Origin: Macrostomum lignano
Taxonomy: Eukaryota
Assembly: GCA_002269645.1 (NCBI GenBank)
Contig: NIVC01000001.1
Span: 868,001-932,000 of the forward strand
Reading direction: 5' to 3'
DNA length: 64,000 nucleotides
Shown one piece after another: positions 13,030-38,783 of this stretch. Below the pieces are notes generated by a model that was not told the DNA's origin, did not search any database, and worked only from the letters and a program-made list of their open reading frames with translations. A program made the position numbers and the translations under genes. Every line of letters starts with the position of its first letter. Position 1 is the first letter of the stretch.

Positions 13030-14362
13030 TAAAGGATGCCTGTCTTCCCTTAAGAAAATGCTTGTGTTGTATGACTACTTCACTGATTCAGCGTAAATGA
13101 GAGTTGCATGCAGTTATTGCAAATTGTAGTAGTTTTTTTAGTCAAATAGAAGATGGAATTAGAAATGGAAAGCTAAAAAAGAAAGTTGTTTTTGCATACT
13201 GGCACCTTTTTCTCTATGACCATACATGCGCAACCTCCAAAATTCGGTCGGCCATGCGACTTAGTTTTAACAAAATGCGACGTAGTTTTCAGCCAAAAAT
13301 GCGACTTACATGTAAAAAAAACCCTAAAGCAAAATTAATGCAACTTTAAGTAAACGGCAGGAGCAACTATGACTGTCTTATTAACCCAAAATGCCTCGTC
13401 AGCTACTTAGTACTACTACTTCCGTATTTTTTTGTCTGGGCATTTTTGCAACTTCCTTGGTTGGCTGCCATTGGTTGGTTGGCTGTAATAGTTATTCTTG
13501 CTATTTACCTTAAAGTTGTGTTAATTTTTTGCTTAAGTTTCTTTTATAAAATAGGCTACATTTTGGTGAAAGAACTTGCATGGCTTATAAATCAAGAAGT
13601 ATGCATATATGCTTATCATTTAAAAAAATAAGGTCTATTAATAAACTTTCATGATAATATAGTCATAGATATTGAGATAAAATTTATTATCAACAAAGAA
13701 TACCTAAATGGAGTTTAGGTATGGTCATCATTTAAGTATGATGAAAAAATTACAAATATTTGTTATATTTCTAATAAATCAATAGTATATTTTTGGTTTT
13801 AACTTATATTTTAGTAGTTATTAGCATTGTAACTAAAGTTTTTGCTTTGCTTTGTAAGTCTTGAAAAGTTTTAATGTCTTGTGAGACTACTAAAATTGTA
13901 TTTTTAAATAGAGATAATAAATCTAGTCAAGATAGTTTATTTAATGTTTTTTTTTGTAAAACTTCTAGTTTTATATATTATTCTATTCAACATCTCTAGA
14001 AAATAATTAAGTTTAAGTAATTCGATTTTACACATTTTTAGTATATTAGATTTCATCTTATCATAGGTTATGAAGTAAGATATTGGATATTTACATTTTT
14101 ATAGTTACATAAATTGATTAAGATGTTATTGTTACTTGTATTTAGAATTACACAACATTCAATTACAGCTAACAGTCCAGGTATATACAGAGTATTTTAA
14201 AGCATGTTTAATTTACTACTGTAAGTAGATGCACTACTCTATGCCAATAATTGTACTTAAAATGGTACTTTGAGTAGGAACATGAAAATCAAGACAGCAT
14301 TGCTTTCGATCAAGTAATAATGGTCTGCTGTAGGTAGTGTAGGCATTCCCTATAAAAATCTG

Positions 14363-16261
14363 TCAAATTACACAATAAGACATTGGTAATGATTTGCCAA
14401 TGGTTACTTTATTGTTTTTTAGTTCTTTATAGCTAGTGTGCATAAACCAGTGCACAGTGTAGGCCTCAGTTGGTATTGACTTGGTAGTGAAATTTCGTTT
14501 TGCCAACTGCCTACATAAGCGCCGTTTGATTGACGACCTGTTTTCAGGCTTCTCACAGGAAAAACGACTCTTTCTGGGCAAATACTTGGTGTCCCAGATT
14601 GGCTGGAACATGTCAGGCTCTGCCAATAGCAGCGAATTGTCTAATAATTCATCTTGCTTATTGCCCATCTTGGCAATGTACTCATCATAGAAATCATTGA
14701 GCATCATTGGTCCAGTTGTGAACACAGCTTCCATTGAGGTCCGCTTCCTATAGGCCCAGTTCCATTGAAACCAGGCTGGCCAGCGCTGCAGCACGTAGGT
14801 TAAAAATGCCTGACCTGGGCGGCTCATAATCAGTGCATTTGATATTAGCCGCGGCTTATTGTAGAGAAACAGAGCGTGCTCAACTGGCTCTTGGGACCAC
14901 ACGGCCGAGTAGTTGGTTAGCAGTGGCCTCAGATCGCGTCTCAGCTCAACATCGATGTCGGCGTACACCCCACCCACATGGTGCATCACAACTAGCCGGC
15001 CAATGTCGGAGCGCTTCAGTCCATTGGTTAGCTGTCTGTAGATTCGGTACAGTGTAGGATAGTATGTGCCTGAAATTTGTATTGGTATGCAGAGCCACAC
15101 AGAAATTTATATTTGTTTGCAAACTTAACAATGCAGAAAAGAAATGGCTTCAACTACATAATTCGTGGCTTTTGCACTTCTTTTTAAACTGTGCAGTATT
15201 GCGCAGTCAGTCTGGCTTTTTGAACTGTGAAATGCATCTTAAATGCCCGTTAAAAATAGCTAGAGTCATTGCAAACGCCTCACTAGTGACTCTAGCGCCT
15301 CTGGACCGACTCTTGTGACTCAGGCGACTCAGGCAACTGTAATGCGACAGAAAGACAACTGTTGAGTCACGAGCACATCACATGAAGTGTAAAAGAGTTG
15401 CGAAAAAGTCGCCCAAAAGTCGATGTGTTAGTGCTAAACTTTCTACTAACTAAAGTAGTATGAAAAGAGCTGTTAAAAACGCTGAATGCGATTATGATTC
15501 ATTAAGTGGCACAGATGCGCTATAGATGCAAATCGGCGAGTCTACAGCTAATTTAGCGCGCCTCAGATATGATTCCACGGTCTCAGAGTCATTATAAAAG
15601 CCTCAAGTTGACTCTTATGCGACTCTTTAACGACTGGTACCGTGACATTTCGTCGCTTTTAGAGTCGTTTCGAGTCACTTCTTTCCTATTTTACTTGTGT
15701 TACCTGCAACAACTTTTGGGGTGACACAAATGACCAACTTGGCCTAGATATCTTTTTCATTGGAATTAGCAATTTTAAATACTTACCAATCAACGTGTCC
15801 AACTGTTGGTCAGTCCAGTGCATGAATCGAAATCGTCTGGCACGTGTGTCTTTACTATTATTAAGCAGCCGGATCCAGGATTTTAAATATTGCACGTGCT
15901 TCTTCAAAGCGTTGCCTCGCTTGCTAGTAAAGTGCACAATTGGCGGTATTTCATCCAGGTAGACTTGACCAATGCGCCAGCATTGAATAGTGCCGTTCGC
16001 TAAGGCAGTTCGCAGTTTCGTAGCTTTATTAGCCTCCTGATAATCGCTCCATTCGGTTGTATTGGCTAACTTTGCTTCGTATTCCTCGGCGTTGAATAGG
16101 CCAGCCACTTCGGGCACGTCAACTAACGGCTGGCGTAGCCTGGACTCGCTGCTTCGGATTTGAGTCACAAACATTAGCAGAGTTACCGCCGCCGCTAGCA
16201 GGCATAAAGTGTAGGTTAGACCGCGAAGCGTGCACTTTCTGGTGCTTGTGTTCAGCATCAT
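14363..16261 (-). CDS. Glycosyltransferase family 32 (DXD sugar-binding) type II membrane protein; exons 15787-16261 and 14363-15069
   Basis: N-terminal TM helix, IPPIVHF..SW..FMHWTD motif, RSDIGRLVVMHHVGGVYADIDVE (DXD) and TTGP motif; phase-1 GT-AG intron. Confidence 0.9.
15270..15680. repeat. GACTC/GAGTC-rich dispersed repeat (family B) in the GT32 intron
   Basis: CCTCAAGTTGACTCTTATGCGACTCTTT...TTTTAGAGTCGT is shared with 17525-17720. Confidence 0.6.
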
Positions 16262-16917
16262 AGCGGCGATGTACGCGCGACTAGAAGATCTGCTATTTAA
16301 ATTCAAACGCTAACATCCGTTATTTCTCTTTGAAACGAAAATATGCTTATTTTGCCATTGACAAGTGATTTTCGGTTAGGATTGTCAGGATTTAGGAAGA
16401 ACGAGTTTTTTGTATTGCCGCTTGGCTGGAGTTGGGTTCGCTGCGGAAGGTCTGGCTTCCTTAATGTCTCCCGGGTTGGAAGGCTGTGGCTGGGAAAATT
16501 TTCCTATCCTCCTCGTCTGAGTTCAGTTCTCTAGCCTGGCTTCAGCTAACATTGAGCTGACTCTCACCCAGCCAGTATAAAAATTGAGAATGCATATTGG
16601 ACTCAGAAATATCGATATGACTAGCGGTCAGCGAACCCTATGCAGTAAACTGGTGCACAGTGCTAAGAATTTCACGCCATGTGTAGATTCCTGGCTATCA
16701 TTGGCTGTGTTGAAAGTATTTAATAAAATTCTTGCAGACTTTTGTTTTACCGAATAAAAAATTGTTACTTCTGTCTTAGTGTGGTCTTGACTCAATTTTC
16801 TATTACTAACATGTGGGGGGGGGGTGAGTTTCGATAGTGCCTTAAAAATTGCCTTGACTATTCATTAGCGTACACTGTGTACTTTTTATTCCAATCTATT
16901 ATCTGCCGCTCACTTTC

Positions 16918-18078
16918 ATGCAGTCCGCTAATCGAACGCCCACCCGTCAGCGGCGACCCGCAGCGGCGCAAGAACTCAAGCATCAACAACAGCAGCATCC
17001 GCGGCCTTCAGTGCAGCTGCACCGAATGCACCTGGAATTCTGTTACACCTGCGGCGCTATGCTGCCGGCCTATTGGGAGTCGCAGGTGGCCTGCTCAGCT
17101 TGCAAGAGAGTCACCTGCTTAGCCTGGTTCTCTGATTGTCCGCCTGCCCAGTTTCAGTTGCTGTTCGAGTCCAACTCTGCTGCTGAACAACAGGCCGATG
17201 ACGAGGCTGATGGTCCAGACTCTGATGCTGAAGGCTGCGATCAGGAGAGAGCTCCCGTAGATCCTAAGTGAGTGGCTGCTCAAGTAATGCTTGCCAGCAC
17301 CGTGTTAATTGAGTTGGTTGGGAAACAGCTGACTTAAGTATATGAGCGTGAAACCTCATTTCTTAGAAAAGGTTTGGTGGCTGGTTTTATGTAAGAGTTT
17401 CATTACCGCTTTAGGAATTTCTCCTATTCTTGACGTATCGGAATTGACTAATTTTGCATTGTATTTTTTAATGTAAAACCGGCCTTCAAATATTTTCCAA
17501 GAAACTGAAATTTACCATCTTTCACAAGTGACGCAGATGCGCTTTAGACGCAACTCAGTGATTCTGCAGCGAATCCAGCGCGACTCAGATACGGCTCAAC
17601 GGCCACAAAGTCGTTTCCGAGTCGCAGACAATAAAACGCCTCAAATTGACTCTTAGGCGACTCTTTGCCGACTTGACATCTCATCGTTTTAGAGTCGTCT
17701 AACAGTCTCTTCTAGTCACTTGCTCTGCCCCTCAGTGCCCTCTTCCCCATCCTACCCGGCAGATTCGCCAAGCTCGTAGCCAGCGTCCGTCGCGAACTGA
17801 TCGGCGGCGAGATGGAGGCGGACGACGACGCGGACGGCGGCAGCTCCCGGCACCGGCAGAAGCAGCAGCGCCGCAGGCTGCAAAAGCAGCAACAACAACA
17901 GCAGCAGGAGTCAGAGAATCAGGACGGTATCAGCTTGCCAACTGTGCGCAGAGAGTGCCAGCACTGCGGCTGCGACAGAATGTACTACAGAACTATGCAG
18001 ACCAGATCGGCTGACGAGGGCCAGACTGTGGTGTACACGTGTACCAGTTGCAGCAGGACCGAAGTGGAATTCTCCTGA
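16918..18078 (+). CDS. POLR1H: RNA polymerase I subunit RPA12 (ZNRD1); exons 16918 (or ATG 17026)-17267 and 17763-18078
   Basis: N-terminal Zn ribbon FCYTCGAMLP...CSAC and C-terminal TFIIS-like ribbon CQHCG...YYRTMQTRSADEGQTVVYTCTSC; phase-2 GT-AG intron. Confidence 0.92.
17525..17720. repeat. Family B GACTC-rich repeat in the POLR1H intron
   Basis: Similar to 15540-15680. Confidence 0.6.
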
Positions 18079-18251
18079 TTTTTGTCTCTTGTCTGTTGCG
18101 GATTGCCTGTCGAGTAACTGGTTGAAATTATTTAAAATTAGAATTTATTGCTTGTCTAGCGACTAATGAGGTTATTGGTTAAGATGGATTGCTAGACTAG
18201 GTAATCACATATTAATGATTAGAATGGATTGCTTGTTTAGCTAGGATGGAT

Positions 18252-18710
18252 CACAGTTACTAGAATAACCAGATGATGGGCCACTCAGCACATTTGCGTG
18301 CAAGCTACTTTCAGTTCAGTAGTAAGTTAAACTAAAGCATTTTAATGTATTTTTAAAGACAAGGCTCATTTATTGGCTCTTACCCACAAACTTAAACCCT
18401 CGAACTCCACACCGAACCTCCACCCCTGCCCTGCCACCCAGTTTTTATTACATTCTTCGGTTGTTCCAGCCTAAATCTGCCATGTACGTTTCAGTGGCCA
18501 ATGTACATTATGGCTGAACCAATTAGCAAGCTGTTTACGTCTGCAAACTCAGGCTTCTAATAAACTTATCAAAGTCATTTCAGCTGCCTTTATTCTTATA
18601 AAATAGCTTATGTATTCTTCATTGCTACTGAACTGAAAGTAGAAAGCTGTTTTACCAAGTATATTTACCAATATGCCTGAGTGGCCCATCTAATTATTTT
18701 AGTATCTGTG
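18252..18710. mobile_element. hAT-type MITE family C, full copy
   Basis: TIR CACAGATACTAGAATAACTAGATGGGCCACTCAG, subterminal inverted ACTTTCAGTTCAGTAG; related copies at 28.7, 32.0, 38.1 and 44.7 kb. Confidence 0.85.
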
Positions 18711-19134
18711 GATAGCATAGCACGTAACGCGCTAGTTTAGCTATCATGAATAGAAATTGTCATTCTTGGCAATTGAGAACACAAGATTTTAGATGCAGTG
18801 CTTTGCTGTAACGCGTGTTTATCATTGCCAGTGCATTTTTTCATATACTTGAGTACAAGTACAAGCATAATAAGACTCATTTAGAACAGGTCAAAAACAC
18901 GTGGCTGAAATCATGTGTGTCCTCTTGAGTGTGAAAGCTTAAAGTGTTGATAGGTTGCAACTCAATTCTGTGTCAATCGTGTATGACAATAAATGCTAAT
19001 AAACAAACACGCATCACTGCTCTAAATTGGAAATGTTTTTTGTCAGAATAATTTCTCTTTGTGAGTAGAACGATAAAATGTTCGAGAAGGTTTAGATTAG
19101 AGCAAATTTGTGAGCTTGGTTGCTGAATTTGCAT

Positions 19135-19345
19135 GCTTCAGTAGGGTGTGAATGCATGGTTTAGTAGGGTGTGAATGCATGCTTTAGTAGGGTGTGAATG
19201 CATGCTTTAGTAGGGTGTGAATGCATGCTTTAGTAGGTTGTGAATGCATGCTTTAGTAGGTTGTGAATGCATGCTTTAGTAGGTTGTGAATAGATTAAGT
19301 AGGTTGTGAATAGGTGTGAATAGATTAAGTAGGTTGTGAATAGAT
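19135..19345. repeat. 23-bp tandem repeat GTAGGGTGTGAATGCATGCTTTA
   Basis: About 6 full units plus degenerate units. Confidence 0.93.
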
Positions 19346-19404
19346 TAAGAAGGGTGTGAATACTCTGTTAGGTTGTGAATACGGCAGAAACAATTCTTCC
19401 TTAG

Positions 19405-19880
19405 ACTGCGCATTGAAGTCAGCCTTGACCCCATTTCTGCGCATCCGCCGCCAGATCCAGGTGCTAATCCAGTTGCTAGGCAAGCGCTCCGATCCCGGCA
19501 GGCCGCTCGCATCCGCCGTGCTCACCGCCTACCTGCGCCGGCGCCAGTTGCCGCCTTGGACGGCGTTTTTCCTGCACCGCGGTCAGGTGATCAACGATCA
19601 GTGGGGCCTGAGCCACTTCAACTGGCCAGTGGAGGGTGCCAACTATCAAGTACTGCGCACCGGCTGCTATCCATACGTGAAGTACCACTGCACCAGGGCG
19701 CCACCGGACCCCAGCCTGCTCAGCCAGGACTGGTTCTTCACCTGTTTGAAGGGGGCTAATTTTGGTCTGCCAACTCTGGCCTACGGCTTGGCGGCCAGGT
19801 TCCTAGCCAGGCACTCGGAGTCTATTAGCGTTGATAACCGCCAGGTCACTGTGTACTTTTGGATGGCTGAGACCTGGTAG
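19405..19880 (+). CDS. C15orf61: C15orf61 (DUF4528) homolog; start codon not in this exon
   Basis: ASAVLT..L..RQLPPWTAF..NDQWGLSHFNWPVEGANYQVLRTGCYPYVKYHCT..LPTLAYG..VTVYF closely matches recalled C15orf61. Candidate acceptor AG at 19403-19404. Confidence 0.9.
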
Positions 19881-19907
19881 CGGCCAATCTCTGCACTCAT
19901 ATCAGCC

Positions 19908-20183
19908 ATGGCCAATTTCGGTGCATTCAATTATTGGCCAACATTCTGGGGCTATCTGCTCATCTTCCTGTGTCTGTGGGGCCTGGCAACTCTGCTCAGA
20001 CTTATTCTGATGCTGCTCTACAGCTGCCTCAGCAGCCTATGGAATCTAATTCGGTCACAGAGGAAGCCAGCTAGCCAAGAGATGAGCAGTACTCCTGCTA
20101 CTACTAATAGTAACTCGATTAGTCAGGTAGAAGAGCTGCCGACTGACTCGCATTCAGACGAATCCGGTATTAAAGATGACTGA
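19908..20183 (+). CDS. Small 91-aa putative single-pass membrane protein of unknown function
   Basis: Good start context (CAGCCATGG), a hydrophobic stretch FWGYLLIFLCLWGLATLLRLILMLLY and an acidic tail; no family recognised. Confidence 0.45.
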   Translation: MANFGAFNYWPTFWGYLLIFLCLWGLATLLRLILMLLYSCLSSLWNLIRSQRKPASQEMSSTPATTNSNSISQVEELPTDSHSDESGIKDD

Positions 20184-20334
20184 GTTATTAGTCTGTAATT
20201 ACTTTGTGTCTGTACTGAGGTTTGATCTCGTGAGTTCAGTTAATTTTAAACAGCGGTTGAGCCGTCACTTGCTTATATTGCCATTTTTAACTGATTGTAC
20301 TTTTTTAACAGTATTGCATTTTCTGTGCTTCTGA

Positions 20335-20535
20335 CGGGTGCCATTTGTGTCTGAGGGGTGCCATTTCTGTATCTTTAGGGTGCCATTTCTGTATCTTTAG
20401 GGTGCCATTTCTGTGTCTTTAGGGAGCCATTTCTGTCTTTAGGGAGCCATTTCTGTGTCTTTAGGGAGCCATTTCTGTGTCTAAGGGGTGCCATTTCTGT
20501 GTCTAAGGGGTGCTATTTCTGTGTCTAAGGGGAAT
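20335..20535. repeat. About 22-bp tandem repeat GGTGCCATTTCTGTGTCT(TT/AA)AG
   Basis: About 9 degenerate units; only remnants occur in the duplicate region near 25720-25780. Confidence 0.85.
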
Positions 20536-20962
20536 AAAAATAATCCCAATTTGACGTCAACTTGTCTTGTTGATTTTGCATTTTGTTTATAGCATGTTGT
20601 GTAGAACAGAATAGGTCAAATTTAGTGATATTGAAATTTAAAGTTTATTATTTTTGTAGCGCAAAAATGGAAGCATGCGTCATATTTCAACTGCGAGCTC
20701 TTCTGCTTTAGTTGTCTGCTATGTGTAGAAATTGTCGGACAGCATATCGTCACTACTTTTGCGTTTGAATACAACTGTACTTTGGAATTTTTTAGTTTGT
20801 GTCTGTTTATTTATTTGCCTGATTGGTCAGGCTAGAATGTACAGGTGATTATGTGATTGTTCAAGCTAGAATGTACAGGTGATTATCTGATTTGTCAGGC
20901 TAGAACAAGAGGCGCTTAATTGATTAATGAGCTGTTGCACTCCCTCCAAAGCTCACCCGGAC

Positions 20963-23900
20963 ATGCCTAAGTACAAGTGCCAGCCGGAGGATGCGCTCAA
21001 GCGCGCCCAGGAATTCCTGGAGGAGGACAACAAAGAATCGGCTCTGGATATCTTAGCCGAGGTGATGAAATACAAGCAGCATAGGCAGTGGAACAAAGTA
21101 CACGAGGACATCATGCTGATGTTCCTGGATCTCTGCGTCGAATTGCGTCGCAACCAGATATTCAAGGAGGTCATCCACCAGTACAAGAACATGACGCTGA
21201 ACGTGAGCCCCAACTCGCTGATTGACATTGTTCGCAAATACCTGGAACAGGCCGATCGCAAGACCGAGGAGGCTCGCCAAAAATCCAAAGACGCCGTGTC
21301 AGCCGAACAAGACGAAGTAGACGATCTGAACGTGATTGAGACGCCCGAGAGCCTGATGATGTCGGCGGTGAGTAGTGAGACTACTCAGGACCGCTCAGAT
21401 CGGGACATCCTGAACCCTTGGCTCAAGTTCATGTGGGAGAGCTACAGGCAGTGCCTGGACCTGTTGCGCAACAATAACAAGCTAGAACGGTTGTACCACG
21501 ACGTGGCCCAGATGGCCTTCCGATTCTGCGAGAAATACGGCAGGAAAACCGAATTCCGCAAGCTGAACGACATCCTGCGCAGCCATCTGCTCAAGTTCCA
21601 GGCTCAGCTGGCCTCCGGACAGCCGGTGCCACCTACAGGGGTGAATCTGAATAACCCGGACACTCAGGGCTACCATCTGGAGACCCGGCTGTCCCAGCTG
21701 GAGTTCTCTATGAATCTGGAGTTGTACAACGAAGCCTACAAGTCTATTGAGGACATCTGGAATCTGGTCACGCTGTCTAAGAAATCACCGAAGCCTAGCA
21801 TTATGGCAAACTACTACACCAAGGTTGCTCTTGTGTTCTGGAAGTGCGGCAGTCACCTGTTTCATGCGGCCGCCCTACACAAGCTGTTTAATTTGCACCG
21901 GGAGCACAAGAAAAATATGGCTAGCGATGAGCTGCAGGTGAGACTGAGGGAGGGTCTCTAGGATGAATCAGTGTGATTTTGCTGAGGCTAGTAGGATTTG
22001 ATCTGAATTAGAAAGGACAAGCTTTTGATGAGGTAAATCAGATTTTAGTGAGACTTCGACAGGGGAGATTGTATTGAGACAAGGGCATTCTAGTAAGAAT
22101 TTTTTTCTGAAATCATAGATACCTAGATAGATACCTACCGACAAACCATTTTTAGTACATGGAATGGAGATTTAGATGGACAACCAAGATTTTTAGTAGA
22201 CAGATAAGAGTTACATTATCCAGGTGAGAGTTTGATATATAATATGGGTGAGATTTCAATGAGCCAGGGGAGATTTCGATGAGACATTGAAGAGTTTAGG
22301 AGTGATCAGTCAGTCGAAAACTCTCACTTCTAGACACTGTGGATTAAGTACCTGCAAAAGGTATATGCAAAATCAAATAACTTTTACTGGAGCGGCTCCT
22401 CTTGTAACTTGTTCGTAGGCTTGCCTTGTGTTGTAGTGACGGCTACCTTCAGTGAATTGTTGTCTCCGGCAGTCCTTAACTTTATCTGTGGGTCGATCAA
22501 AAGCGACAGCGAATCAGAAGTCTTGACGGTGTCCTCGAGCTCGGAATTAACAATAGAACGTGCACCCTTATCAACAATTGAATTCTCTGAGTTTCTGTAA
22601 TACAAGGGGTGTCCGGAAATTTCTGACACTTTTAACCTCAGAGCAAAAACAATAACAACTACAAGCACAACTTTGGTGTCGTATACTTGCGTGCTGCTGT
22701 TTTGATTTCTGTGATTATTGACACCATCATGAGCGTGCAATCGAAAGAAGGCCAAAGACATGGAATATTTACGCTTTGGAGCATCGGAAAGACGGGTGCA
22801 GAGATCCATTCTTATTCGACATCAATTCCTGGGTCAGATGCAGTGAGCCGGCGTACCGTCTACCGCTTGGTAGAGTAGTTCAAGTCAGGACTTACCGATG
22901 TCGTTGATCGACCAAGATCAGGTCGTCCATGCCATCCTGGGTTCGAAGACTTGACTAATCGAATACTCGATGTTCTGGAGGATGACAATCGTTTCAAAGT
23001 TGGAGAGCTGGCTGAGAGGCTGCAGATTCCACGGATGATGATGAATAGCTGCAATTCGTTTCTTTGAGGAGAAAACATCGCTTTGTATATTTTCTAAACT
23101 TATGCTGTAAGACCATCAGTGACGTTGAGGTGCTTTTTCACACAAATTTCGAATGAAAGATTCAAAATACACGCGACTGAATTCATTGGAAAGAAAAGAT
23201 GTGCCGCTGTAAATTGTCACCAAAGTTGTGCTTGCAGCTGCTACTGCTTTTGCTCTGAAGTTAAGTGTCATAACTCTCCGGACACCCCTCTTAGGTCCTC
23301 TTGAAGGGCGTCTTCTTCGTTACGTCCGAAACGTAACGGATAACTCAAATCGATCAATAGATCCTCTAGGAACATATCCTAGGAAACAAGAAGGCCTTTC
23401 TCAAATGTGTCGACAATAAACGGCTCTCATAAACTTAATCAATCAACTTATTAACTCTAACTATAAAGAACTAAATCCGGTAAGCACTTACCAATAGGAC
23501 AGAATTTCGTTCCTCAGAGATGGTCCTTTGTCTTCTTCTCGAGTCTTTGAGACCACTTCGAGTCTGAAGTTTTTACTCGGATTTTCACTTCTGTTTAATT
23601 TATCGTAAAGTTTTGGTAAAACAGGTTTAAAATCGGATATTTACTTAGGTCATATGTACTGATTAAGGGTTTGAGCAATACCATATATGGAGTTAATCAA
23701 ACACAGCTGCTGAAATCTGGTTCCTTGATCAAACAAACGTTGGTCCTACGTAGAGTTCTGAGTCACCCTGTTTGCATGACTCATTTCAATAAATAGGTTG
23801 CAGTTTTAAATTCATTAAGTGTTACTTTAAGTAGCATATTACGGTATGGTTTATCAGCTCTCTGCAACAGAATCAGTGCGCCAGGTAAGATTTTGATAAT

Positions 23901-25542
23901 AAGATGGGTGAGATTTTAATCAGCCAGGTGAGATTTTAATGAGTCATGATGAGATTATAAATGAGCCTACTTACATAGGTCACTCAGTCAGGCAGCTTAC
24001 ACAGCATACCCCACGAAAAATGCAGACCATGGCCAGCACTGTACTGTGCGCCACCCTGGCCATCCCGCTGCCATTCGTCCGCGATCGCCGCGCCGACTCG
24101 CTGCTGGAATCCGGCGAGATCGCCAGCAGCGCCAAGCAGAAGATGCTGTGCAGCCTCCTCGGCATGCCCATCCCGCCCAGCCGCCGCTCACTCTGCGCCG
24201 ATCTGGTCCGCGGCGGCATCGTTGAGCTGGCCCACCCGGAGCTGGCCTCGCTGCACGCTCAGCTGGAGCAGCGGTTCCAGCCTTTGAAACTGGCCGACCG
24301 CTGCGCCCCTGGTCTGCAGAACATCCGCTCCAATGACCGGCTGGCCCATTACGCCCGGCCAATTGAAGACATGCTGATCTGCCGCACCCTGATCCAGACC
24401 GCACAGGTGTACGCCAGCATCACCCTGCCGCGGTTTGCCACCCTGTTCCCGTTCTGCGACCGGCTCCGCCTGGAGACCACTGTGGTTGAGGCTGCCCGCA
24501 ATCTGGAGATTCCAGTTCGGATTGATCACAGGCGCGGTAGTCTGCTGTTTGGCGGCTTCTCCCAGCTGGGCATTTCACAGCGCGAGGAGGGTGTGGTTAG
24601 CGACGGACCAAGCGTGAAGACTGCCGACCAGCTCAGCAAACAGCTGTTGCTGCTGGGAAGCGCTCTGCAGGTGCGTCAAAGATATGAGCTGAAACTTAAG
24701 ATCAAGTAATAAAACTTACTATAAGTACTAAAAATTTAACAAAATCTATTTTGGGTGTCTATAGTCAGGGTTTTGGTTTGTTGAAGGTCCCGACGGCATT
24801 TGAGTGATGAAGGACTGCTTGAGAGACTAGCTGAGGATGTCCAGCAGTTGAGGTTTGCCACTGTCGAGGCTTGTTGATCAGCAAAACTAGAATACACTAG
24901 CGATTATGGAAAAAATCCGACCTTCTGGCAAAGTTGTTGAATATCCCGACAGTCCGGAAGTTAAGTTAGCCCGTGTTCTTGAATTCCATGTCCCAGCGTT
25001 GCTCCGTTCCGGCGCAGCAAAGAATTGTCAGGGGGTCCCCCTTATACTCCTGTTAAACTACTTACATCGCCTACTGAACAGTAGAATATTATTGTTAAAT
25101 TATAGAATTTCAAAGAGTGTCTATGGTTTTTGAAGGAAGGTCCTGGCGCCTATCGCGAGTTCAGATCCCATTTTTAGAAGCTCACAGTACTAGGCTACTT
25201 GCAATAGTAGTATTAATTTTCTTATTTGGCATAAAAGACACGCTATTTTTAAAACATTGCCAGGGTGTGCTCATAATCATTCCATCGGTGAAGGACGCGA
25301 AGCTTGAGCAGCGCAAAGCTCTGGCTCACAAGTACGGCCAGACAGCGGCTCTCGATCACCAGAAACTGCTGCAGCGCAAGGAGCTGATCGAGGAGCGCAA
25401 GGAATACCTGGAACAGCTGCAGCAGCACCGCAGGCTGCCAAAGCAGCAGGAGCAGCAGGAGCCAGAGACTCCCGCCGCTAAACTAACACCGAAGAAGAAT
25501 AAGAAGAAAAGAAGAAAGAATAAGAAGGAGTCAGAGATTTAG
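20963..25542 (+). CDS. EIF3A: Truncated eIF3a paralog (632 aa); exons 20963-21937, 24026-24670, 25264-25542
   Basis: Intact ATG, GT-AG sites and frame. Matches the downstream copy up to ...YLEQLQQ (about 25426), then has a novel tail ending KKNKKKRRKNKKESEI*. Confidence 0.85.
22603..23291 (+). mobile_element. Mariner-like deletion derivative in intron 1 of the truncated eIF3A
   Basis: Imperfect TIRs of about 75 bp (CAAGGGGTGTCCGGA...), TA at both ends, and transposase remnant ...AVSRRTVYRLVE*FKSGLTDVVDRPRSGRP with an in-frame stop. Confidence 0.9.
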
Positions 25543-26086
25543 GACGGCAGCATGTACCGAGTACCACGAGTATTACTTTGTGTCTCTACTGAGCTAATTT
25601 ATTTATATAATTAATTGATAATAAATTTTCAACAGCGGTTGAGCCGTCACTTGCTTATATTGCCATTTTAAACTGATTGTGCTTTTTTAACAGTATTGAA
25701 TTTTCTCTAATTTTCTCTAGGAGTGTCATTTCTCTGTATCTGGTGGCGCCATTTTTGTGTCAGAGAGGGGTGCCATGTTTCTAAGAGGAAATCACAATGA
25801 TGACCAAATTTATCGCCTATTTGTGTTCCTATCGACTTTGCATTTTATATTGCCTTTTGTGTAGAACAGAGTAGGTCGAACTTGGTGATATTGCAATTTC
25901 AAACGTTTATTGCTTTTTTTGTAGCGCAAAAATGCAAACATTTGGCATATTTTAACTGCTGCTATTCAGCTTTATATAGTTGCTTTCCATGCGTAGAAAT
26001 TGTCTGCCAGTATATCGTCACTACTTTTTGCTTTTAAATACAGCTGTACTTTAGAATGTTATAAGTTGTGTTTGTTTCTTTATTTA

Positions 26087-26425
26087 CCTGATTGGTCAGG
26101 CTAGAATGTACAATGATTATCTGATTGGCCAGGCTAGAATGTACAATGATTATCTGATTGCTCAGGCTAGAATGTACAATGATTATCTGATTCGTCAGGC
26201 TAGAATGTACAGGTGATTATCTGATTGGTCAGGCTAGAATGTACAGGTGATTATCTGATTGGTCAGGCTAGAATGTACAGGTGATTATCTGATTGGTCAG
26301 GCTAGAATGTACAGGTGATTATCTGATTCGTCAGGCTAGAATGTACAGGTGATTATCTGATTCGTCAGGCTAGAATGTACAGGTGATTATCTGATCGGTC
26401 AGGCAGAATGTACAGGTGATGTATG
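26087..26425. repeat. 33/34-bp tandem repeat CTGATTGGTCAGGCTAGAATGTACAGGTGATTAT upstream of eIF3A copy 2
   Basis: About 10 units; about 3 units at 20818-20905 upstream of copy 1. Confidence 0.93.
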
Positions 26426-26472
26426 ATGAATGTACAGCTGTTGCACTCCCTGCCTCCGCAGCTCGCCGGGAC

Positions 26473-29400
26473 ATGCCCCAGTACTTCAACAAGCCGGAGA
26501 ATGCGCTCAAGCGCGCCCAGGAATTCCTGGAAGTGGACAAGAAAGAATCGGCTCTGGACATCTTAGCCGAGGTGATGAAGTCCAAGCGGCATAGGCAGTG
26601 GAACAAAGTACACGAGGACATCATGCTGATGTTCCTGGATCTCTGCGTCGAACTGCGTCGCAACCAGATATTCAAGGAGGTCATCCACCAGTACAAGAAC
26701 ATGACGCTGAACGTGAGCCCCAGCTCGCTGATTGACATTGTTCGCAAATACCTGGAACAGGCCGATCGCAAGACCGAGGAGGCTCGCCAAAAATCCAAAG
26801 ACGCCGTGTCAGCCGAACAAGACGAAGTAGACGATCTGGACGTGATTGAGACGCCCGAGAGTCTGATGATGTCGGCAGTGAGCGGTGAGACTACTCAGGA
26901 CCGCTCAGATCGGGCCATTCTGGTCCCTTGGCTCAAGTTCATGTGGGAGAGCTACAGGCAGTGCCTGGACCTGTTGCGCAACAATAACAAGCTAGAACGG
27001 TTGTACCACGACGTGGCCCAGATGGCCTTCCGATTCTGCGAGAAATACGGCAGGAAAACCGAATTCCGCAAGCTGAACGACATCCTGCGCAGCCATCTGC
27101 TCAAGTTCCAGGCTCAGCTGGCCTCCGGACAGCCGGTGCCACCTACAGGGGTGAATCTGAATAACCCGGACACTCAGGGCTACCATCTGGAGACCCGGCT
27201 GTCCCAGCTGGAGTTCTCTATGAATCTGGAGCTGTACAACGAGGCCTACAAGTCTATTGAGGACATCTGGAATCTGGTCACGCTGTCTAAGAAATCGCCG
27301 AAGCCTAGCATTATGGCCAACTACTACACCAAGGTTGCTCTTGTGTTCTGGAAGTGCGGCAGTCACCTGTTTCACGCGGCCGCCCTACACAAGCTGTTTA
27401 ATTTGCACCGGGAGCACAAGAAAAATATGGCTAGCGATGAGCTGCAGGTGAGACTGAGGGAGGGTCTTTAGGATGAATCAAAGTGTGATTTTGCTGAGGC
27501 TAATAGGATTTTGATTAGACAAGTGAGAAATAAATCAGAAATGACTAGATTTGGATGTGATAGATGAGTTTTTAATAAAACGTGACATTTTAGTGAGATA
27601 TGTCACGATGTGAATCATGTGATATTTCAATGAAAAATTTAGGATTTCAATGAGACGTGTGAGATTTCAATAAAAAATGTAAGATCTCAATGAGACATGT
27701 GAGATTTCAATGAGAAATGTGAGATCTTAATGAGACGTGTAAGATTGCAATGAGACGTGAGATGTCAAAGAGAAATGTAGAATATGAGATGAGAAATGTT
27801 AGATGTCAATGAGAAATGGGAGATGTCAATGAGCTTACCGAATAAGCTCAGTCAGGCAGCTTACACAGCATACCCCACGAAAAATGCAGACCATGGCCAG
27901 CACTGTGCTGTGCGCCACCCTGGCCATCCCGCTGCCATTCGTCCGCGATCGCCACGCCGACTCGCTGCTGGAATCTGGCGAGATCGCCAGCAGCGCCAAG
28001 CAGAAGATGCTGTGCAGCCTCCTCGGCATGCCCATCCCGCCCAGCCGCCGCTCACTCTGCGCCGATCTGGTCCGCGGCGGCATCGTTGAGCTGGCCCACC
28101 CGGAGCTGGCCTCGCTGCACGCTCAGCTGGAGCAGCGGTTCCAGCCTTTGAAACTGGCCGACCGCTGCGCCCCCGGTCTGCAGAACATCCGCTCCAATGA
28201 CCGGCTGGCCCATTACGCCCGGCCAATTGAGGACATGCTGATCTGCCGCACCCTGATCCAGACCGCACAGGTGTACGCCAGCATCACCCTGCCGCGGTTT
28301 GCCACCCTGTTCCCGTTCTGCGACCGGCTCCGCCTGGAGACCACTGTGGTTGAGGCTGCCCGCAATCTGGAGATTCCAGTTCGGATTGATCACAGGCGCG
28401 GTAGTCTGCTGTTTGGCGGCTTCTCCCAGCTGGGCATTTCACAGCGCGAGGAGGGTGTGCTTAGCGACGGGCCAAGCGTGAAGACTGCCGACCAGCTCAG
28501 CAAACAGCTGGTGCTGCTGGGAAGCGCTCTGCAGGTACGGTGGAGATTGGATGGGGTTTTGTGCAGTTGGGTGTACACCTGACAGCTCTCGATGTGCAGA
28601 TAGAACGCTAACCGCACCCAGATCTGCTTAACTTTAAGACGCTTTATAGAGGGGGTCGGCAAACTTATATGTAGCCACAGATACTAGAATAACTAGACGG
28701 GCCACTCAGGCATATATACTTAGTAAAACATCTTTCTACTTTCAGTTCAGTAGCAAAGAATACATAAGCTATTTTATAAACATTTTTCTCTATTAAGTAT
28801 TTTTGTCAGCGTTAGCCTACTGAACAGTAGCAAGAGAAGGATATGATGGTTAAATTACAAAGCTTCAAACGTCTGTCACTCTATGGTGTTCGAGTCCCAT
28901 TTTGAGCACACAAATTAAGCAGCTCACGCTTGGCTACTTACAGTAGTAATATTAATGGCTCATTAGCATAAAGAAAAGGCCAATTTGAAACATCTCCAGG
29001 GCGTGCTGACAATCATTCAACCGGAGAAAGATGCCCAGATTGAGCAGCGCAAAGCTCTGGCTCACAAGTACGGCCAGACAGCTTCTCGCGATCACCAGAA
29101 ACTGCTGCAGCGCAAGGAGCTGATCGAGGAGCGCAAAGAATACCTGGAACAGCTGCAGCAGCGCCGTGAAGAGGAGGAACACATGAAGCAGCGCCAGCAG
29201 CAGGAGCGAATCCAGCAGCTGGAGAGCGAGCGGATGGAGCAGGACGTCAAGCGTAGGCAGCTTGAGCGAAAGGAGATTGAGCAGCGCAATATTCAGCTGA
29301 AGGTAAGTAGCGGCTGTGTGATTCAATAAGTGGCAGCTGTGTGATTCAATGATTGGCAGCTGTGTGATTCAATGAGTGACAGCTGTGTGATTCAATGATT

Positions 29401-31705
29401 GACAGCTGTGTGATTCAATGATTGGCAGCTGTGTGATTCAATGATTGACAGCTGTGTGATTCAATGATTGGCAGCTGTGTGATTCAATAATTTGCAGCTG
29501 TGTGATTCAATGAGTGACAGCTGTGTGATTCAATGATTGGCAGCTGTGTGATTCAATGATTGACAGCTGTGTGATTCAATGATTGGCAGCTGTGTGATTC
29601 AATGATTGACAGCTGTGTGATTCAATGATTGGCAGCTGTGTGATTCAATAATTTTCAGCTGTGTGATTCAATGAGTGACAGCTGTGTGATTCAATGATTG
29701 GCAGCTGTGTGATTCAATAATTTTCAGCTGTGTGATTCAATGATTGGCAGCTGTGTGATTCAATAATTTGCAGCTGTGTGATTCAATGAGTGACAGCTGT
29801 GTGATTCAATGATTGACAGCTGTGTGATTCAATGATTGGCAGCTGTGTGATTCAATGATTGGCAGCTGTGTGATTCAATGATTGGCAGCTGTGTGATTCA
29901 ATGAGTGACAGCTGTGTGATTCAATTAGCAGTGCTTCTCAAATAGTGACACAGCGACAAATAGTGACACAATGAGTGACCCAAAGAGTATCACAGTTAGT
30001 GACTCAGTGAGTACCATAATAAGTGACGATAGTGACGATAAGGTAGTTATTAATGTCGCGGGTGAAAGACAGTAATTGGGCTCAATTAGCAGTTAATAGC
30101 AGAATTCACAACACAAAGCCGTTCACGCCATCGCCCATGCCAAATTCCCTGCAGGTAAAGAAGGAGCGCATCGAAGTGCTGAAGGGCACGGAGGCCGGCC
30201 GGCGCGCCTTCGCCAACCTGGACGACGCCAACATCGAAGACATCAACGCCGACGAGGTTTTCGCTCGGCACGTTGAAAAAGAGCGCCGAGAGCTGATGGA
30301 GCGCATCAAGACCCAGGAGAAGAAGCTGGATCATCTGGCCCGGGCTAAGCGCCTGGAAGAGATCCCACTGCTCACTGCCGAGTATGAGAAGCGGGCTGAG
30401 GAGGCACGTCAGCGCCACGAACAGGCGGAGGCCGAGCGGCTGCGCACGCTGAAAGAGCAGCACGCCAGGCTGCTGCAGCTGAAGCAGGAGGCCCAGAAGA
30501 TCATGCCATTCAAGGCCGAGTTCGAAGACGAGATTCTGTCCGAGCGTCGGTCCGAGTTCGATCGCCGCATGGACGAATGGCGCCAGCGTTTAGAGACGGC
30601 GCGCAAGGAGCGCCTCGCCGAGCGCAAGCTGCAGCGCGAGCAGGATAGGCGCGAAGAGTTTGTGCGCCAGCGCCTGGCCGAGCTGGCCGCCCAGCGGGAG
30701 GCGAAGGAGCGCGCGGCCCGCGAGGAAAAGGAGCGCCAGATGCAGGAGGAGAACAAGAAGAAGCAGCAGCACTATGAGCAGCAGAAGGCTAAGCTAGATG
30801 AGCAGGCCAAGGCTCAGGCGCAGAAGGAGGCCGAGATTGAAGAAAGGCTCAAAGCTCAGCGCGAAGGCGGCGGCACCAGTGCCGCTTCCGGTCCCGGTGA
30901 AAAATGGCGCCCAGCCGGCGGCTCAAAGTGGCGCGAGCGCGAGAAGGAAAAAGAGGACAGCTTCAAGCGGCCAAGCGACAATGCCGGCAGTTGGCGCGCT
31001 GGTGGAGGGGAGCGAACTCGCGACGATAAGCCACTCCGACGGGAGGAGCGGCCGGATCGCTCTGACCGTACTGACCGGTTAGATCGTGATCGCCGAGATG
31101 ACCGCCGCGATGACCGCCGCGTTGACCGACTTCGTGATGACCGCCGCGAGGACCGTCGAGAAGACCGTCAGGAAGACCGTCGGGAGGACCGTCGCGATGA
31201 CCGCCGGGAAGACCGTCGGGAGGACCGCCGTGATGACCGCCGTGATGACCGACGCGATGACCGACGTCGCGATGACCGCCGTGATGACCATCGCGATGAC
31301 CGCCGTGATGACCGTCGCGATGACCGTCGTGATGACCGTCGCGATGACCGTCGTGATGACCGTCGCGATGACCGCCGTGATGACCGACGCCGCGAGGACC
31401 GTCCGTCAATCCAACGCCGAGACGAAGGCCGACGCGACTTGACGGAGGGCTCTTGGCGCAGCAGCGGCGCCAGCTCAGCTTTCGGATCATCGCGCAAGTC
31501 GATTCCGCCTCGTCGGGGCGACGACTCCAGCCGTGGCGCCGCCGACGCTAGCGGCACGCCGTCCAGGCGCCAAGACGAGCGCGGCGAGTCCGGTGGGGCC
31601 TGGCGCTCTCAGCCGGCGGCGCCGAGGGCTCAGCAGGCCGCGCCGGCAGCCGCTGCCAGCTCTGGCGAAGCGGACGGCTGGACAACCGTCAGCAAGAAGA
31701 AGTGA
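26473..31705 (+). CDS. EIF3A: Eukaryotic translation initiation factor 3 subunit A, full length (1157 aa); exons 26473-27447, 27890-28534, 29000-29302, 30155-31705
   Basis: MPQYFNKPENALKRAQEFLEV..., PCI region, RAKRLEEIPL motif and C-terminal DDRR repeats; all introns are phase 0 and GT-AG. Confidence 0.96.
27600..27830. repeat. Degenerate about 20-bp repeat GAGATTTCAATGAGACATGT in eIF3A intron 1
   Basis: Direct inspection. Confidence 0.75.
28677..28790. mobile_element. MITE family C, one-ended fragment
   Basis: CACAGATACTAGAATAACTAGACGGGCCACTCAG terminus only. Confidence 0.75.
29310..29925. repeat. 23-bp tandem repeat GCAGCTGTGTGATTCAATGATTG in eIF3A intron 3
   Basis: About 26 units, starting just after the donor site. 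Confidence 0.97.
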
Positions 31706-32001: not shown

Positions 32002-32445
32002 CAAAGATACTAGAATAACTAGATGGGCCACTCAGGCATATAATTAGTAAAACAGCTTTCTACTTTTAGTTCAGTAGCAAAGAAGAATACGTAAGCTATT
32101 TTATAAAATAAAGGCAGCTGAAATGACTGAAAGTTTAGACGCCAGCTTGCAGGCGTAAACAGCTTGCTAATTAGTTCACCCATAATGTACATTTAGCCAG
32201 TCCACTGAAATGTACATGGCAGCTTTAGGTTGGAATTCCGCGAAAGGCAATAAAAATAGGGGCGGGTTGGGGGTGGTGTGGAAAGGCGCGGTTGGAGGGT
32301 TTCAGCTGGGGGGGATGGTAAGAGACAAAAGTGAGCCTTGGCTTTAAAAATACATTAAAATGCTTCAGTTTAACTTGCTACTGAACTGAAAGTAGCTTAC
32401 ACGCAAATGTGCTGAGTGGCCCATCTGGTTATTCCAGTATCTGCG
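32002..32445. mobile_element. hAT-type MITE family C, full copy with 8-bp TSD
   Basis: TIRs are flanked on both sides by GTATTGGG (31994-32001 and 32446-32453). Confidence 0.88.
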
Positions 32446-33199
32446 GTATTGGGTCGCATTTTAAATCCAGTTCAAACAATTGTCCCGTCTTCGTGTTTTT
32501 CTCTCCGTCTGAATTGTGTTTTCTTTGCTTGTTATTTTTGTCCCGAGCAGAGCTGGCGGGCTTGTTGGGTTGAGCAGCGGCACGCAAACAGTTGCTAAGT
32601 GGAATTTAATTGAATTCAAGAAAAATAAAATGACAATTTTAGTCAGCGCTTGATTCTATTTTAGGCTGGCCTGTCATCTCTTGTTAAATGCGCTGCTGTC
32701 TGAGCATGACTTTGTTTATTTTTTGCTACTTGTGTACTTTATTCGGCAATGACTGAGACAGATATGAGATAACCGACGTGACAACAGAGCAGCTTAGCGG
32801 TAACATGGACCAGTCCCCAAAACACAAAGTGTGTACAATTGCCTGACAATAGGAGAGCCTCCCTGCGAACTTTCGCGGATAAACAGGCAGAAGTACATAA
32901 GCCAGCCTGCATAAAGCACAAAATGGTCATCTTCTCTGGAACCGTGGCTTCCTTCTATGTTCAGAGGGATGTTTGGGCGTGACACCTGTCTTTTTCTAGG
33001 CGCAACTTTCTGTGTGCTTTAGATTTTTATCAACATTCATTCCCGATCATGTCTTTAAATTATTCCCAGGACTTGACGCCAATACTTTATAAGAACGCCA
33101 ATATCTACTCTTAAAAATCGAGCCTTTTTATACCCGTGAACTTCATTCCTAGCCTAAGCATTTCCCTAAGCTCGAACTACTAACAGTAGCGTAAAAGCT

Positions 33200-37874: not shown

Positions 37875-38121
37875 CTACGTAAAATTGTACAAGTTTTGTA
37901 CGAGTTGGAAAATGAAGACCTATCTTCGTAATGTTATTTTTTCGGTCAAAACTGCCACCTAAAGTTTTCCAAGAAACGGATAGTTTCCTGTCCTTCTCGA
38001 GAAGTCATTGGTTCGACACTGAATTTCACTCCTGCACCATGAGAGCTGACTCAGTCTTGTGCAGGAACGATTAGTATAACAAAGCAATCATCAAATTAGA
38101 TTCAAACCACTAAAATAGCCA

Positions 38122-38558: not shown

Positions 38559-38783
38559 ATTCAAACTGACAAAGGCCTCCGTCGTGTTATCCTCATTGGC
38601 TGAAAGCTGATTGTGTAAAAGTACTCGAATTTGCCAACGCCTTGTAGCCATAGACAGTTCGCCTCTGCTTGCAAAGAATTAGCTAAAAATGCCTTCCGTA
38701 GAGTCATGAGCGTAGCCCCCCCCCCCACTCGTGACGCAGGGGAGCAGATTCGGTGAAGTATAAACTAGGATTTTTGTACAAAG

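Follow-up and report, generated by a model that had tools for sequence, protein, structure and literature searches.

The window analysed here is a stretch of 64,000 nucleotides from Macrostomum lignano (contig NIVC01000001.1 of assembly GCA_002269645.1, positions 868,001 to 932,000 of the forward strand), and all positions below refer to it. It carries two eIF3a genes on the plus strand, arranged head-to-tail. The downstream gene, copy 2 (26473-31705), is a full-length eIF3a of 1157 aa with exons at 26473-27447 (975 nt), 27890-28534 (645 nt), 29000-29302, and 30155-31705. The upstream gene, copy 1, has this exon structure in common with copy 2 and is an intact GT-AG gene with a product of 632 aa. 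Its ATG lies at 20963, and (I) exon 1 (20963-21937; 975 nt, codons 1-325), (II) exon 2 (24026-24670; 645 nt, codons 326-540), and (III) exon 3 (25264-25542; 279 nt including the TAG), with AG and GT at every exon boundary, lead to a C-terminus that reads HRRLPKQQEQQEPETPAAKLTPKKNKKKRRKNKKESEI. Approximately 561 C-terminal residues of copy 2 are absent. We thus reproduce the ATG, the exon lengths of 975 and 645 nt, the splice sites, the 632-aa product (with a loss then put at about 560 residues), and the tandem with the full-length gene that a preliminary description had read from this DNA.

The ATG, splice sites, and poly(A) signal of copy 1 are all kept, and its stop lies in the last exon, so that a trigger for nonsense-mediated decay is absent. 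Both introns sit at the parental positions, which rules out an origin as a processed retrocopy or retropseudogene. The introns of the two copies have diverged and copy 1 has gained a transposon, as the preliminary description also held: the sequences become unalignable beyond approximately 60-100 nt from the exons, and intron 1 of copy 1 contains a 685-bp DNA-transposon remnant (22605-23289) bounded by terminal inverted repeats of approximately 74 nt (22605-22678 and 23218-23289). This remnant retains weak transposase-type helix-turn-helix traces with scores under the Pfam cut-offs. Rfam and tRNA scans gave no matches.

Both copies encode the eIF3a PCI/TPR-like domain (PF22591) and a PCI domain. 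In copy 1, PF22591 spans residues 9-412 and 389 of 390 model positions (Pfam, E = 2.8e-124), and the PCI winged helix (PF01399) is borderline, at 22.8 bits against a cut-off of 22. The predicted structure shows a full PCI fold with a pLDDT of 80, and the PCI helix and strand elements in residues 456-500 are modelled with pLDDT values of 78-89 in ten-residue blocks. Copy 1 aligns with the solved human and yeast eIF3a structures, covering human residues 1-618, and shares 46-48% identity with animal eIF3a. The homology that it has to copy 2 and human eIF3a stops at residue 596 (approximately human residue 588); the TPR-like/PCI region is kept in full, as is the first long helix after it. Copy 1 has no counterpart to the helical spectrin/HLD region at the C-terminus, where the eIF3b RRM docks, and the nearly invariant columns of this domain in the eIF3a alignment, the RAKRLEEIPLL block, are unmatched.

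The breakpoint of the duplication lies inside the parental coding sequence, after codon 596. The duplicated unit of approximately 5.4 kb (20198-25430, matching 25572-29166) comprises the upstream region, exons 1 and 2, and exon 3 up to its nucleotide 168. Within exon 3 of copy 1, the eIF3a-derived part (25264-25430, codons 541-596) ends where homology to exon 3 of copy 2 ends, at a 12-nt microhomology (25419-25430; GCAGCAGC(A)CCG) that is found both in eIF3a exon 3 (29155-29166) and in an exon of a TFIIS-type gene (17862-17873). Beyond it lies a foreign tail of 36 residues. Using short-word BLAST, we located the parent of this tail in the linker-coding part (17862-17926) of the last exon of a TFIIS-zinc-ribbon gene (CDS 16921-18078, plus strand), two genes upstream of copy 1. 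The local alignment scores 23, compared with 9.9 +/- 1.5 for shuffled sequences, of which none in 300 reaches 23. A small ORF just upstream (20050-20190), whose 3' end was also considered as the parent, was rejected with a score of 7 versus 8.6 +/- 1.4 for shuffles.

The eIF3a exon is joined in frame, at the microhomology, to approximately 60 nt of the TFIIS-type gene. The first part of the captured fragment (25431-25468; parent 17874-17916) is read in the parent's frame and encodes RLPKQQEQQEPE. A 58-nt insertion with an A/G-rich 3' half follows (25469-25526), and the K/R cluster of the tail, TPAAKLTPKKNKKKRRKNK(K), is encoded within it. The second part of the fragment (25527-25547; parent 17906-17926) encodes ESEI and the TAG stop (25540-25542), which arose by point mutation where the parent reads AAT CAG and copy 1 ATT TAG. 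An 11-nt direct repeat, GGAG[C/T]CAGAGA, brackets the insertion (25458-25468 and 25527-25537), and both of its copies align to one single site in the parent. The putative 3' UTR (25565-25706, with AATAAA at 25620) is the duplicated 3' flank of the small upstream ORF, homologous from 20197. MMBIR/FoSTeS-like template switching may have formed the junction, or else a larger duplication from which 2.3 kb were later deleted; the insertion could represent a small retroposed fragment, and the captured piece may have gained it later or have arrived with it.

The preliminary description had proposed that the K/R cluster is a nuclear localization signal (NLS) or an RNA-binding patch. KKNKKKRRKNKK matches the K-K/R-x-K/R monopartite NLS pattern at the level of sequence. 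Against the proposal, the cluster derives from the A/G-rich insertion and its codons are atypical: AGA encodes both Arg residues of the tail and none of the 165 Arg codons in copy 2, and GC3 is 0.62 in the tail versus 0.75 in copy 2. The basic tail looks accidental in origin rather than shaped as an NLS or RNA-binding patch. A homology search with the last 139 aa of copy 1 found no match in an index that is insensitive here, since it misses the protein P0001 despite long identical stretches. An HMMER scan of 1.84 billion representatives returned P0001 as the sole close relative, and no further carrier of the tail turned up among the proteins of two very large libraries.

Divergence between the two copies is markedly uneven. 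The encoded proteins are 95.4% identical across exon 1, 97.7% across exon 2, and 84% across the 58 shared residues of exon 3; at the nucleotide level, exons 1 and 2 are 97-99% identical. Exon 1 has 32 nucleotide differences, with all 14 replaced residues confined to codons 3-151, exon 2 has 8 (5 synonymous, 3 replacement), and the eIF3a part of exon 3 has 17 in 168 nt. Accordingly, dS rises from 0.03 in exon 2 and 0.07 in exon 1 to 0.24 in exon 3 (Fisher p = 0.0015), and the longest identical run, in exon 1, extends over 307 nt (p = 0.008). Alignable non-coding DNA differs by approximately 20%. In intron 1, high identity persists for approximately 60 nt and is then lost; in the 50 nt preceding exon 2 it is raised only modestly. 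The 1788 shared coding nucleotides contain no indels, whereas the flanking non-coding DNA is indel-rich. As read from these alignments, repeated gene conversion has homogenised exons 1 and 2 of copy 1 with those of copy 2.

The dS of exon 3 and the flank divergence of approximately 20% reflect how old the duplication really is, and conversion therefore explains the open frame of copy 1. The probability that no stop arises on the copy 1 lineage is 0.36 at the approximately 28 substitutions of that lineage, and 0.001 at the approximately 180 expected without conversion. Selection is therefore not needed to explain the frame. The age itself can be set against a homeologous locus on contig NIVC01003574.1. 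The M. lignano assembly contains 180 Mb of duplicated blocks, and trans-splicing and operons are widespread in this species (PMC5730564, PMC8629364). Upstream regions group as ((copy 1, homeologous locus L001), copy 2), with distances of 0.095, 0.197, and 0.201, and on these distances eIF3a was duplicated before the homeologous locus split off. Both homeologous loci (L001 and L002) end in a repeat array ahead of any eIF3a exon, and contig NIVC01003574.1 is interrupted within the repeat array that lies upstream of its eIF3a.

Analysis of the substitutions on each lineage reveals that nearly all residue changes belong to copy 1. The copies differ at 27 residues, and copy 2 has the outgroup state at 18 of these and copy 1 at 2. 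Changes on the copy 1 lineage include several at invariant N-terminal positions (F5K, N10D, V21E, K23N, and D123N). The conserved motif M-P-x-Y-F-Q-R-P-E-N-A-L-K-R-A and the invariant K23 are not kept in copy 1, which reads MPKYKCQPEDALKRA, while copy 2 retains the outgroup states in this motif. The overall dN/dS of the copy 1 lineage is approximately 0.5 to 0.6, and neutrality of copy 1 as a whole is not rejected (p = 0.08 to 0.4). Codons 152-540 carry 3 replacement versus 10 synonymous changes (p = 0.006 to 0.026 under neutrality of copy 1, for a post hoc partition with small counts), a hint that the PCI core is under purifying selection. This weak, post hoc constraint keeps a protein function for copy 1 possible; over the protein as a whole, constraint would be largely relaxed.

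Copy 1 is probably transcribed, since it sits in a same-strand, trans-spliced gene array. An acceptor AG (20950-20951) and an 11-nt leader precede its ATG (20950-20962 in all), and form a putative spliced-leader trans-splice or cis acceptor. The context is ctccctccaaag before and CTCACCCGGACATG after the junction in copy 1, and ctgcctccgcag and CTCGCCGGGACATG at the equivalent position in copy 2; the spliced-leader acceptor motif of M. lignano is [T/C]TNCAG (PMC8629364). The same AG is used by a gene model of the ML2 assembly, and the CDS deposited in GenBank begins at 20954, nine nt 5' of the ATG and 2 nt past the AG. We note that each of the two public annotations of M. lignano fuses copy 1 with copy 2. 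The GenBank annotation, which was made from RNA-seq with StringTie, TACO, and TBONE (PMC5730564), gives one gene from 20954 to past 29880 with a product of 1160 aa (3 + 1157). By exact look-up in a protein collection, copy 1, copy 2, their HPD- and RRD-prefixed versions, and three copy 1/copy 2 chimeras were all absent. A literature search found no mention of eIF3a in M. lignano, and two supplementary sets contained no eIF3a entry.

Taken together, we lean, by a modest degree, towards the reading that copy 1, a chimeric partial tandem duplicate, is a long-lived by-product whose frame has been maintained mainly by conversion from the essential copy, and not a specialised eIF3 subunit. The alternative is that copy 1 is a functional, PCI-only eIF3a under selection, which binds or sequesters eIF3c and the octamer subunits without recruiting eIF3b-g-i and acts as a specialised or dominant-negative subunit, with the tail as an NLS or RNA-binding patch. 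In favour of such a role are the intact ORF, splice sites, and poly(A) signal, the confidently predicted PCI fold (Pfam E of 1e-124), the replacement deficit in codons 152-540 and the lack of indels in the coding sequence, an age beyond the homeolog split, and the NLS pattern in the tail. The CDS start 2 nt past the acceptor AG is likewise compatible with the 5' end of a trans-spliced mRNA. However, the replacements of copy 1 strike invariant residues in the most conserved N-terminal motif, its dN/dS does not reject neutrality, conversion alone accounts for the open frame, and the tail stems from an A/G-rich insertion with atypical codons and has no second carrier in the two libraries searched.

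What is known of eIF3 assembly bears on this alternative from both sides. Copy 1 resembles canonical eIF3a (human EIF3A/p170, yeast TIF32, and copy 2) in the TPR-like/PCI make-up of the N-terminal 500 residues and in the first helix after the PCI, but differs in lacking the C-terminal region of approximately 560 residues (spectrin/HLD eIF3b-RRM docking, RAKRLEEIPLL block, and D/E-R repeats) and in the radical changes to the conserved N-terminal motif. Octamer work in vitro reportedly used an eIF3a truncated at about residue 654, close to the end of copy 1. The C-terminal region of eIF3a binds the eIF3b RRM and connects to the b-g-i module (PMC5737393), in agreement with the preliminary description, which had named the missing region as the link to eIF3b/i/g. 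The octamer can assemble in vitro from recombinant subunits, in the absence of the eIF3a-eIF3b core (PMC5737393); copy 1, unlike that system, is a naturally occurring gene, ends in 36 foreign residues, and carries N-terminal replacements. In human cells in vivo, by contrast, a nucleation core of eIF3a and eIF3b appears to be strictly required for the octamer to assemble (PMC5737393), which makes a b-less octamer less likely. Integration of MMTV yields a truncated eIF3e (PMC5737393), which, similarly to copy 1, is a C-terminally truncated PCI subunit that might still enter eIF3 and alter its properties; that truncation is somatic and insertional, affects another subunit, and has a documented phenotype, whereas that of copy 1 is germline and evolutionary.

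On this evidence, the specialised or dominant-negative role that the preliminary description had suggested for copy 1 finds no support in the sequence and is not favoured, and we regard a functional PCI-only variant as possible but doubtful. Its fuller form, an expressed, trans-spliced PCI-only eIF3a kept since before the genome duplication that joins or titrates eIF3c and the octamer subunits without eIF3b-g-i, appears unlikely to us.

A further alternative holds that exons 1 and 2 of copy 1 serve as a 5' cassette, spliced from the donor at 24670 to exon 3 of copy 2 (29000), which would put a variant N-terminus on an eIF3a of 1157 aa and leave the truncated ORF minor or unused. The RNA-seq-built GenBank gene has just such an extent, and the exons concerned are all in phase 0 and of equal length in both copies. 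However, this splice must skip a nearer good acceptor (25263), the poly(A) signal, and the acceptor and exons of copy 2, and the ML2 model reads through copy 1 exon 3 instead. Two obvious chimeric products are missing from the protein collection, and the near-identical exons make chimeras of transcript-to-genome mapping likely. We consider a cassette improbable.

The tandem order and the tail recur in the ML2 gene model (UniRef A0A1I8G4D3), which comes from a different assembler, although ML2 and Mlig_3_7 rest on one shared set of PacBio reads. An artefact of assembly, or a merging of haplotypes or of homeologs, conceivable given these shared reads, the repeat-rich, partly polyploid DV1 genome with its known assembly redundancy and errors (PMC5730564), and the break in NIVC01003574.1, is scarcely credible: a haplotype merge predicts two full-length, near-identical units, not an exon-internal truncation with a diverged third-gene fragment and an insertion; divergence in exon 3, the introns, and the upstream regions amounts to 10 to 20% or more, far above read error; the flanks are unique and continuous with syntenic genes; and the junction peptide is identical from two different assemblers. 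Copy 1 is a real chimeric partial tandem duplicate of M. lignano eIF3a.

As such, copy 1 can be compared with a known class of genes. Chimeric genes from partial tandem duplication have been catalogued in Drosophila, with head-to-tail units, a breakpoint in a coding exon, a 3' coding end taken from neighbouring DNA, and flanks carried along. Copy 1 shares the head-to-tail units, the exon-internal breakpoint, the recruited 3' coding end, and the regulatory flanks, but differs in the templated third-gene fragment and insertion at its junction, and in duplicated exons that remain near-identical to the parent through conversion.

In copy 1, the birth of a chimeric gene is thus legible in sequence, from the microhomology junction and the captured in-frame fragment of a third gene to the insertion that made the basic cluster and the borrowed 3' end. 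The favoured reading, a by-product held open by conversion, also means that intact does not equal selected: a truncated copy can long retain its open frame through conversion from an essential parent, a caution for scans that count intact paralogs as functional. The fused public annotations matter for the design of eIF3a RNAi or knockout experiments in M. lignano. If the protein is made, copy 1 would be a naturally C-terminally truncated eIF3a and could offer an in vivo test of whether the PCI core forms without the eIF3a-eIF3b nucleus. Should the fuller, trans-spliced form of the PCI-only alternative be true, copy 1 would naturally regulate the stoichiometry of eIF3 or form a specialised version of it, for instance in germline cells or neoblasts.

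The truncated upstream eIF3a duplicate (copy 1) is intact, as the preliminary description had claimed: exons 20963-21937, 24026-24670 and 25264-25542 splice into a 1899-nt ORF of 632 aa, all exon borders are canonical AG/GT, and the tail matches the sequence originally read exactly. The full-length gene (copy 2; 26473-27447, 27890-28534, 29000-29302 and 30155-31705; 1157 aa) adjoins it 3', and the transposon placed in copy 1 intron 1 is borne out as an element of 685 bp that is bounded by TIRs and retains faint HTH remnants of a transposase. Among protein matches to the region, eIF3a of Macrostomum lignano ranks first (96% identity), and the others are eIF3a orthologues of other animals (42-52% identical). 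A domain search places PF22591 and the PCI domain in both proteins. The span aligned with copy 1 in solved structures is human eIF3a residues 1-618, and true homology to copy 2 stops at residue 596 (approximately human residue 588). The AlphaFold model of copy 1 (pLDDT 80) predicts a confident PCI fold up to about residue 500, helices at 524-545 and 550-605, and then a low-confidence tail. Compared with the eIF3a family, copy 1 is a member by its PCI region but lacks two hallmarks: the region at the C-terminus that docks eIF3b, and the conserved motif at the N-terminus.

Self-comparison of the window reveals that 20198-25430 is collinear with 25572-29166, the exons forming islands of 97-100% identity. 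Identity is ~94% over the 60 nt at the start of intron 1 and 88% over the last 50 nt 5' of exon 2, falls to random level just past the exon 2 donor, and is only 90% in the common part of exon 3. Nei-Gojobori estimates put dS between the copies at 0.07 in exon 1 (0.10 in codons 1-151; 0.05 in the remainder), 0.03 in exon 2 and 0.24 in exon 3, which differs significantly from exons 1-2 (Fisher p = 0.0015). An identical run of 307 nt exceeds the expectation for evenly spread differences (p = 0.008), and alignable DNA upstream of the copies is ~20% different. Selection is unable to erase synonymous and intron-edge differences, and gene conversion has therefore homogenised exons 1-2; the real age of the duplication is seen in exon 3 and the flanks. 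A locus homeologous to the upstream part of the region occurs at both ends of contig NIVC01003574.1 (L001 and L002). Over 294 shared upstream columns, copy 1 lies at a distance of 0.095 from this locus, while copy 2 is ~0.20 from each of them, and the tandem duplication is therefore older than the split of the two loci.

The homeologous contig ends in a 34-nt repeat array upstream of eIF3a, and L001 and L002 both break off in it. At either end, this 90-kb contig bears the same pair of TFIIS-type and DUF4528 genes, the two pairs being inverted and 0.3% apart, which may reflect an assembly problem or a palindromic duplication. The same 34-nt tandem repeat, TGATTGGTCAGGCTAGAATGTACAGGTGATTATC, lies directly 5' of the acceptor and ATG in both eIF3a copies (20819-20905, 2.6 copies; 26084-26420, 10 copies). 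The homeologous locus has >13 copies (L001 12231-12684 and 17226-17494), with a 1356-aa minus-strand ORF (12944-17014) inserted within the L001 array. The repeat might act as a promoter or outron element, or be no more than a satellite. Within copy 2, a 23-nt tandem array (29313-29925; 26.7 copies, 92% matches) fills most of intron 3, and the D/E-R repeat region (31087-31390) is built at the DNA level from a 12/24/36-nt tandem array, removed as a false intron in both models based on the other assembly, ML2 (P0001 and P0124). A ~450 bp dispersed repeat family, 75-90% identical and present in both orientations (18247-18710, 28668-28783, 32002-32449, 38109-38563 and 44693-44823), is probably a MITE-like element; copy 2 intron 2 contains one fragment of it, and another is located in the 3' flank of eIF3a. 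Further 3' of eIF3a, 33833-37675 (+) holds two long ORFs with reverse transcriptase, RNase H and integrase-like sequence, and looks like an LTR-retrotransposon-like element.

A short-word search matches the tail of copy 1 to 17862-17926, and to the same site in L001 and L002; local alignment to 17862-17926 scores 23, against 9.9 +/- 1.5 for shuffles, 0 of 300 of which reach this value. The matched segment lies within the last coding exon of a 220-aa TFIIS-type zinc ribbon gene (CDS 16921-18078) and encodes a low-complexity linker, ...QQRRRLQKQQQQQQQESENQDG..., just N-terminal of the zinc ribbon. The 12-mer GCAGCAGCGCCG is common to eIF3a exon 3 (...CTGCAGCAGCGCCG / TGAAG) and the TFIIS-type exon (...AAGCAGCAGCGCCG / CAGGCTGC), and it is exactly at this 12-mer (25419-25430) that copy 1 changes from one to the other, reading frame kept. 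The captured fragment is split by a 58-nt insertion (25469-25526), whose 3' half is A/G-rich (GAAGAAGAATAAGAAGAAAAGAAGAAAGAATAAGAA) and for which no parent sequence was found. GGAG[C/T]CAGAGA occurs once on each side of the insertion, both occurrences aligning to one parental site; the arrangement resembles a target-site duplication and would fit a tiny retroposed fragment. The K/R cluster, in which the preliminary description saw a possible NLS or RNA-binding patch, is encoded wholly inside this insertion: both Arg codons of the tail are AGA, a codon used for 0 of 165 Arg in copy 2, and both Asn codons of the insert are AAT. The stop (TAG, 25540) arose where the parental AAT CAG now reads ATT TAG, and from 25565 onward the 3' flank of a small ORF ending at 20183 recurs in diverged form, with an AATAAA at 25620. 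Given this layout of junction, insertion, stop and 3' flank, we read the basic tail as a mosaic of accidents. Two routes could have produced it: a single complex template-switching event, or a larger duplication that reached from the TFIIS-type exon into eIF3a exon 3 and then lost 2.3 kb by deletion. As a source of the 140 nt between the homology blocks, the DNA immediately 5' of 20198 was rejected, its alignment score being no better than shuffles. The small ORF itself (19908-20183, +; 91 aa) begins 30 nt after the DUF4528 ORF (19440-19877), has a hydrophobic N-terminal half and no Pfam match, and is conserved in L001; the deposited annotation does not list it as a gene of its own.

We somewhat favor a reading in which copy 1 is a by-product largely free of constraint that conversion has maintained. 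When ancestral states are polarised by outgroups (16 animal eIF3a sequences), 18 of the 27 differing residues show the outgroup state in copy 2 and 2 show it in copy 1, with 7 ties; changes on the copy 1 lineage include F5, N10, V21, the invariant K23 and D123. Assuming synonymous changes split equally between lineages, dN/dS is ~0.5-0.6 for copy 1 and ~0.07 for copy 2. A conditional binomial test on the whole of copy 1 does not reject neutrality (p = 0.08; 0.4 when transition bias is allowed for), and codons 1-151 and exon 3 are consistent with it. The open frame is no evidence for selection, since P(no stop) is 0.36 with the ~28 substitutions on this lineage; it would be 0.001 without conversion (~180 substitutions).

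That copy 1 instead encodes a functional truncated eIF3a seems to us rather unlikely. The only hint of constraint in the substitution tests comes from codons 152-540, with 3 replacement against 10 synonymous differences (p = 0.006 to 0.026; 13 differences in a post hoc partition), and the absence of coding indels mildly favors constraint. The preliminary description proposed an octamer uncoupled from the b-i-g module, and its domain background agrees with a published review: eIF3a pairs with eIF3c through its PCI domain, which nucleates the octamer, and its C-terminal spectrin/HLD region provides the docking site for the eIF3b RRM, linking the octamer to eIF3b-g-i (PMC5737393). In vivo, octamer assembly seems to depend strictly on the eIF3a-eIF3b core, whereas in vitro it does not (PMC5737393); lacking the C-terminal region, copy 1 protein may therefore fail to assemble altogether.

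We consider it improbable that copy 1 exons serve as an alternative 5' cassette. The RNA-seq-based GenBank annotation has one CDS, starting at 20954, three codons 5' of the copy 1 ATG and 2 nt past an AG, a position fitting a trans-spliced or spliced 5' end. It extends beyond 29880 and its product is 1160 aa (3 + 1157), which suggests a model starting in copy 1 and finishing in copy 2; sequences predicted for this product had no exact match in the protein collection. The ML2/UniProt model A0A1I8G4D3 (1815 aa) is a fusion of three genes, DUF4528, copy 1 (whose tail is kept up to ...NKKE) and copy 2, and has part of the 91-aa ORF spliced in. Both public annotations merge the copies into a single gene. 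The acceptor is AAAG at copy 1 and the preferred CAG at copy 2. All five genes from 16921 to 31705 lie on the same strand, and co-transcription is therefore plausible; M. lignano has SL trans-splicing and operons (PMC5730564, PMC8629364). Its genome (PacBio/Canu, DV1 line) contains 180 Mb of duplicated blocks and abundant repeats (PMC5730564, PMC8629364). In the Mlig_3_7 assembly, a locus on contig NIVC01000001.1 matches window 9440-29880 at 100% identity, which puts the window at about 868,001-932,000 of that contig. We give hardly any credence to copy 1 being an assembly artefact.

In mechanism, copy 1 falls among the chimeric genes that arise by partial tandem duplication, with interlocus gene conversion superimposed. 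This mechanism class is already well known, and copy 1 is not annotated as a separate gene. Its protein, if assembled, could titrate partners, and copy 1 would gain interest if copy-1-specific mRNA and peptides exist, candidate diagnostic peptides being GVLIIIPSVK, ALAHKYGQTAALDHQK and LPKQQEQQEPETPAAK.
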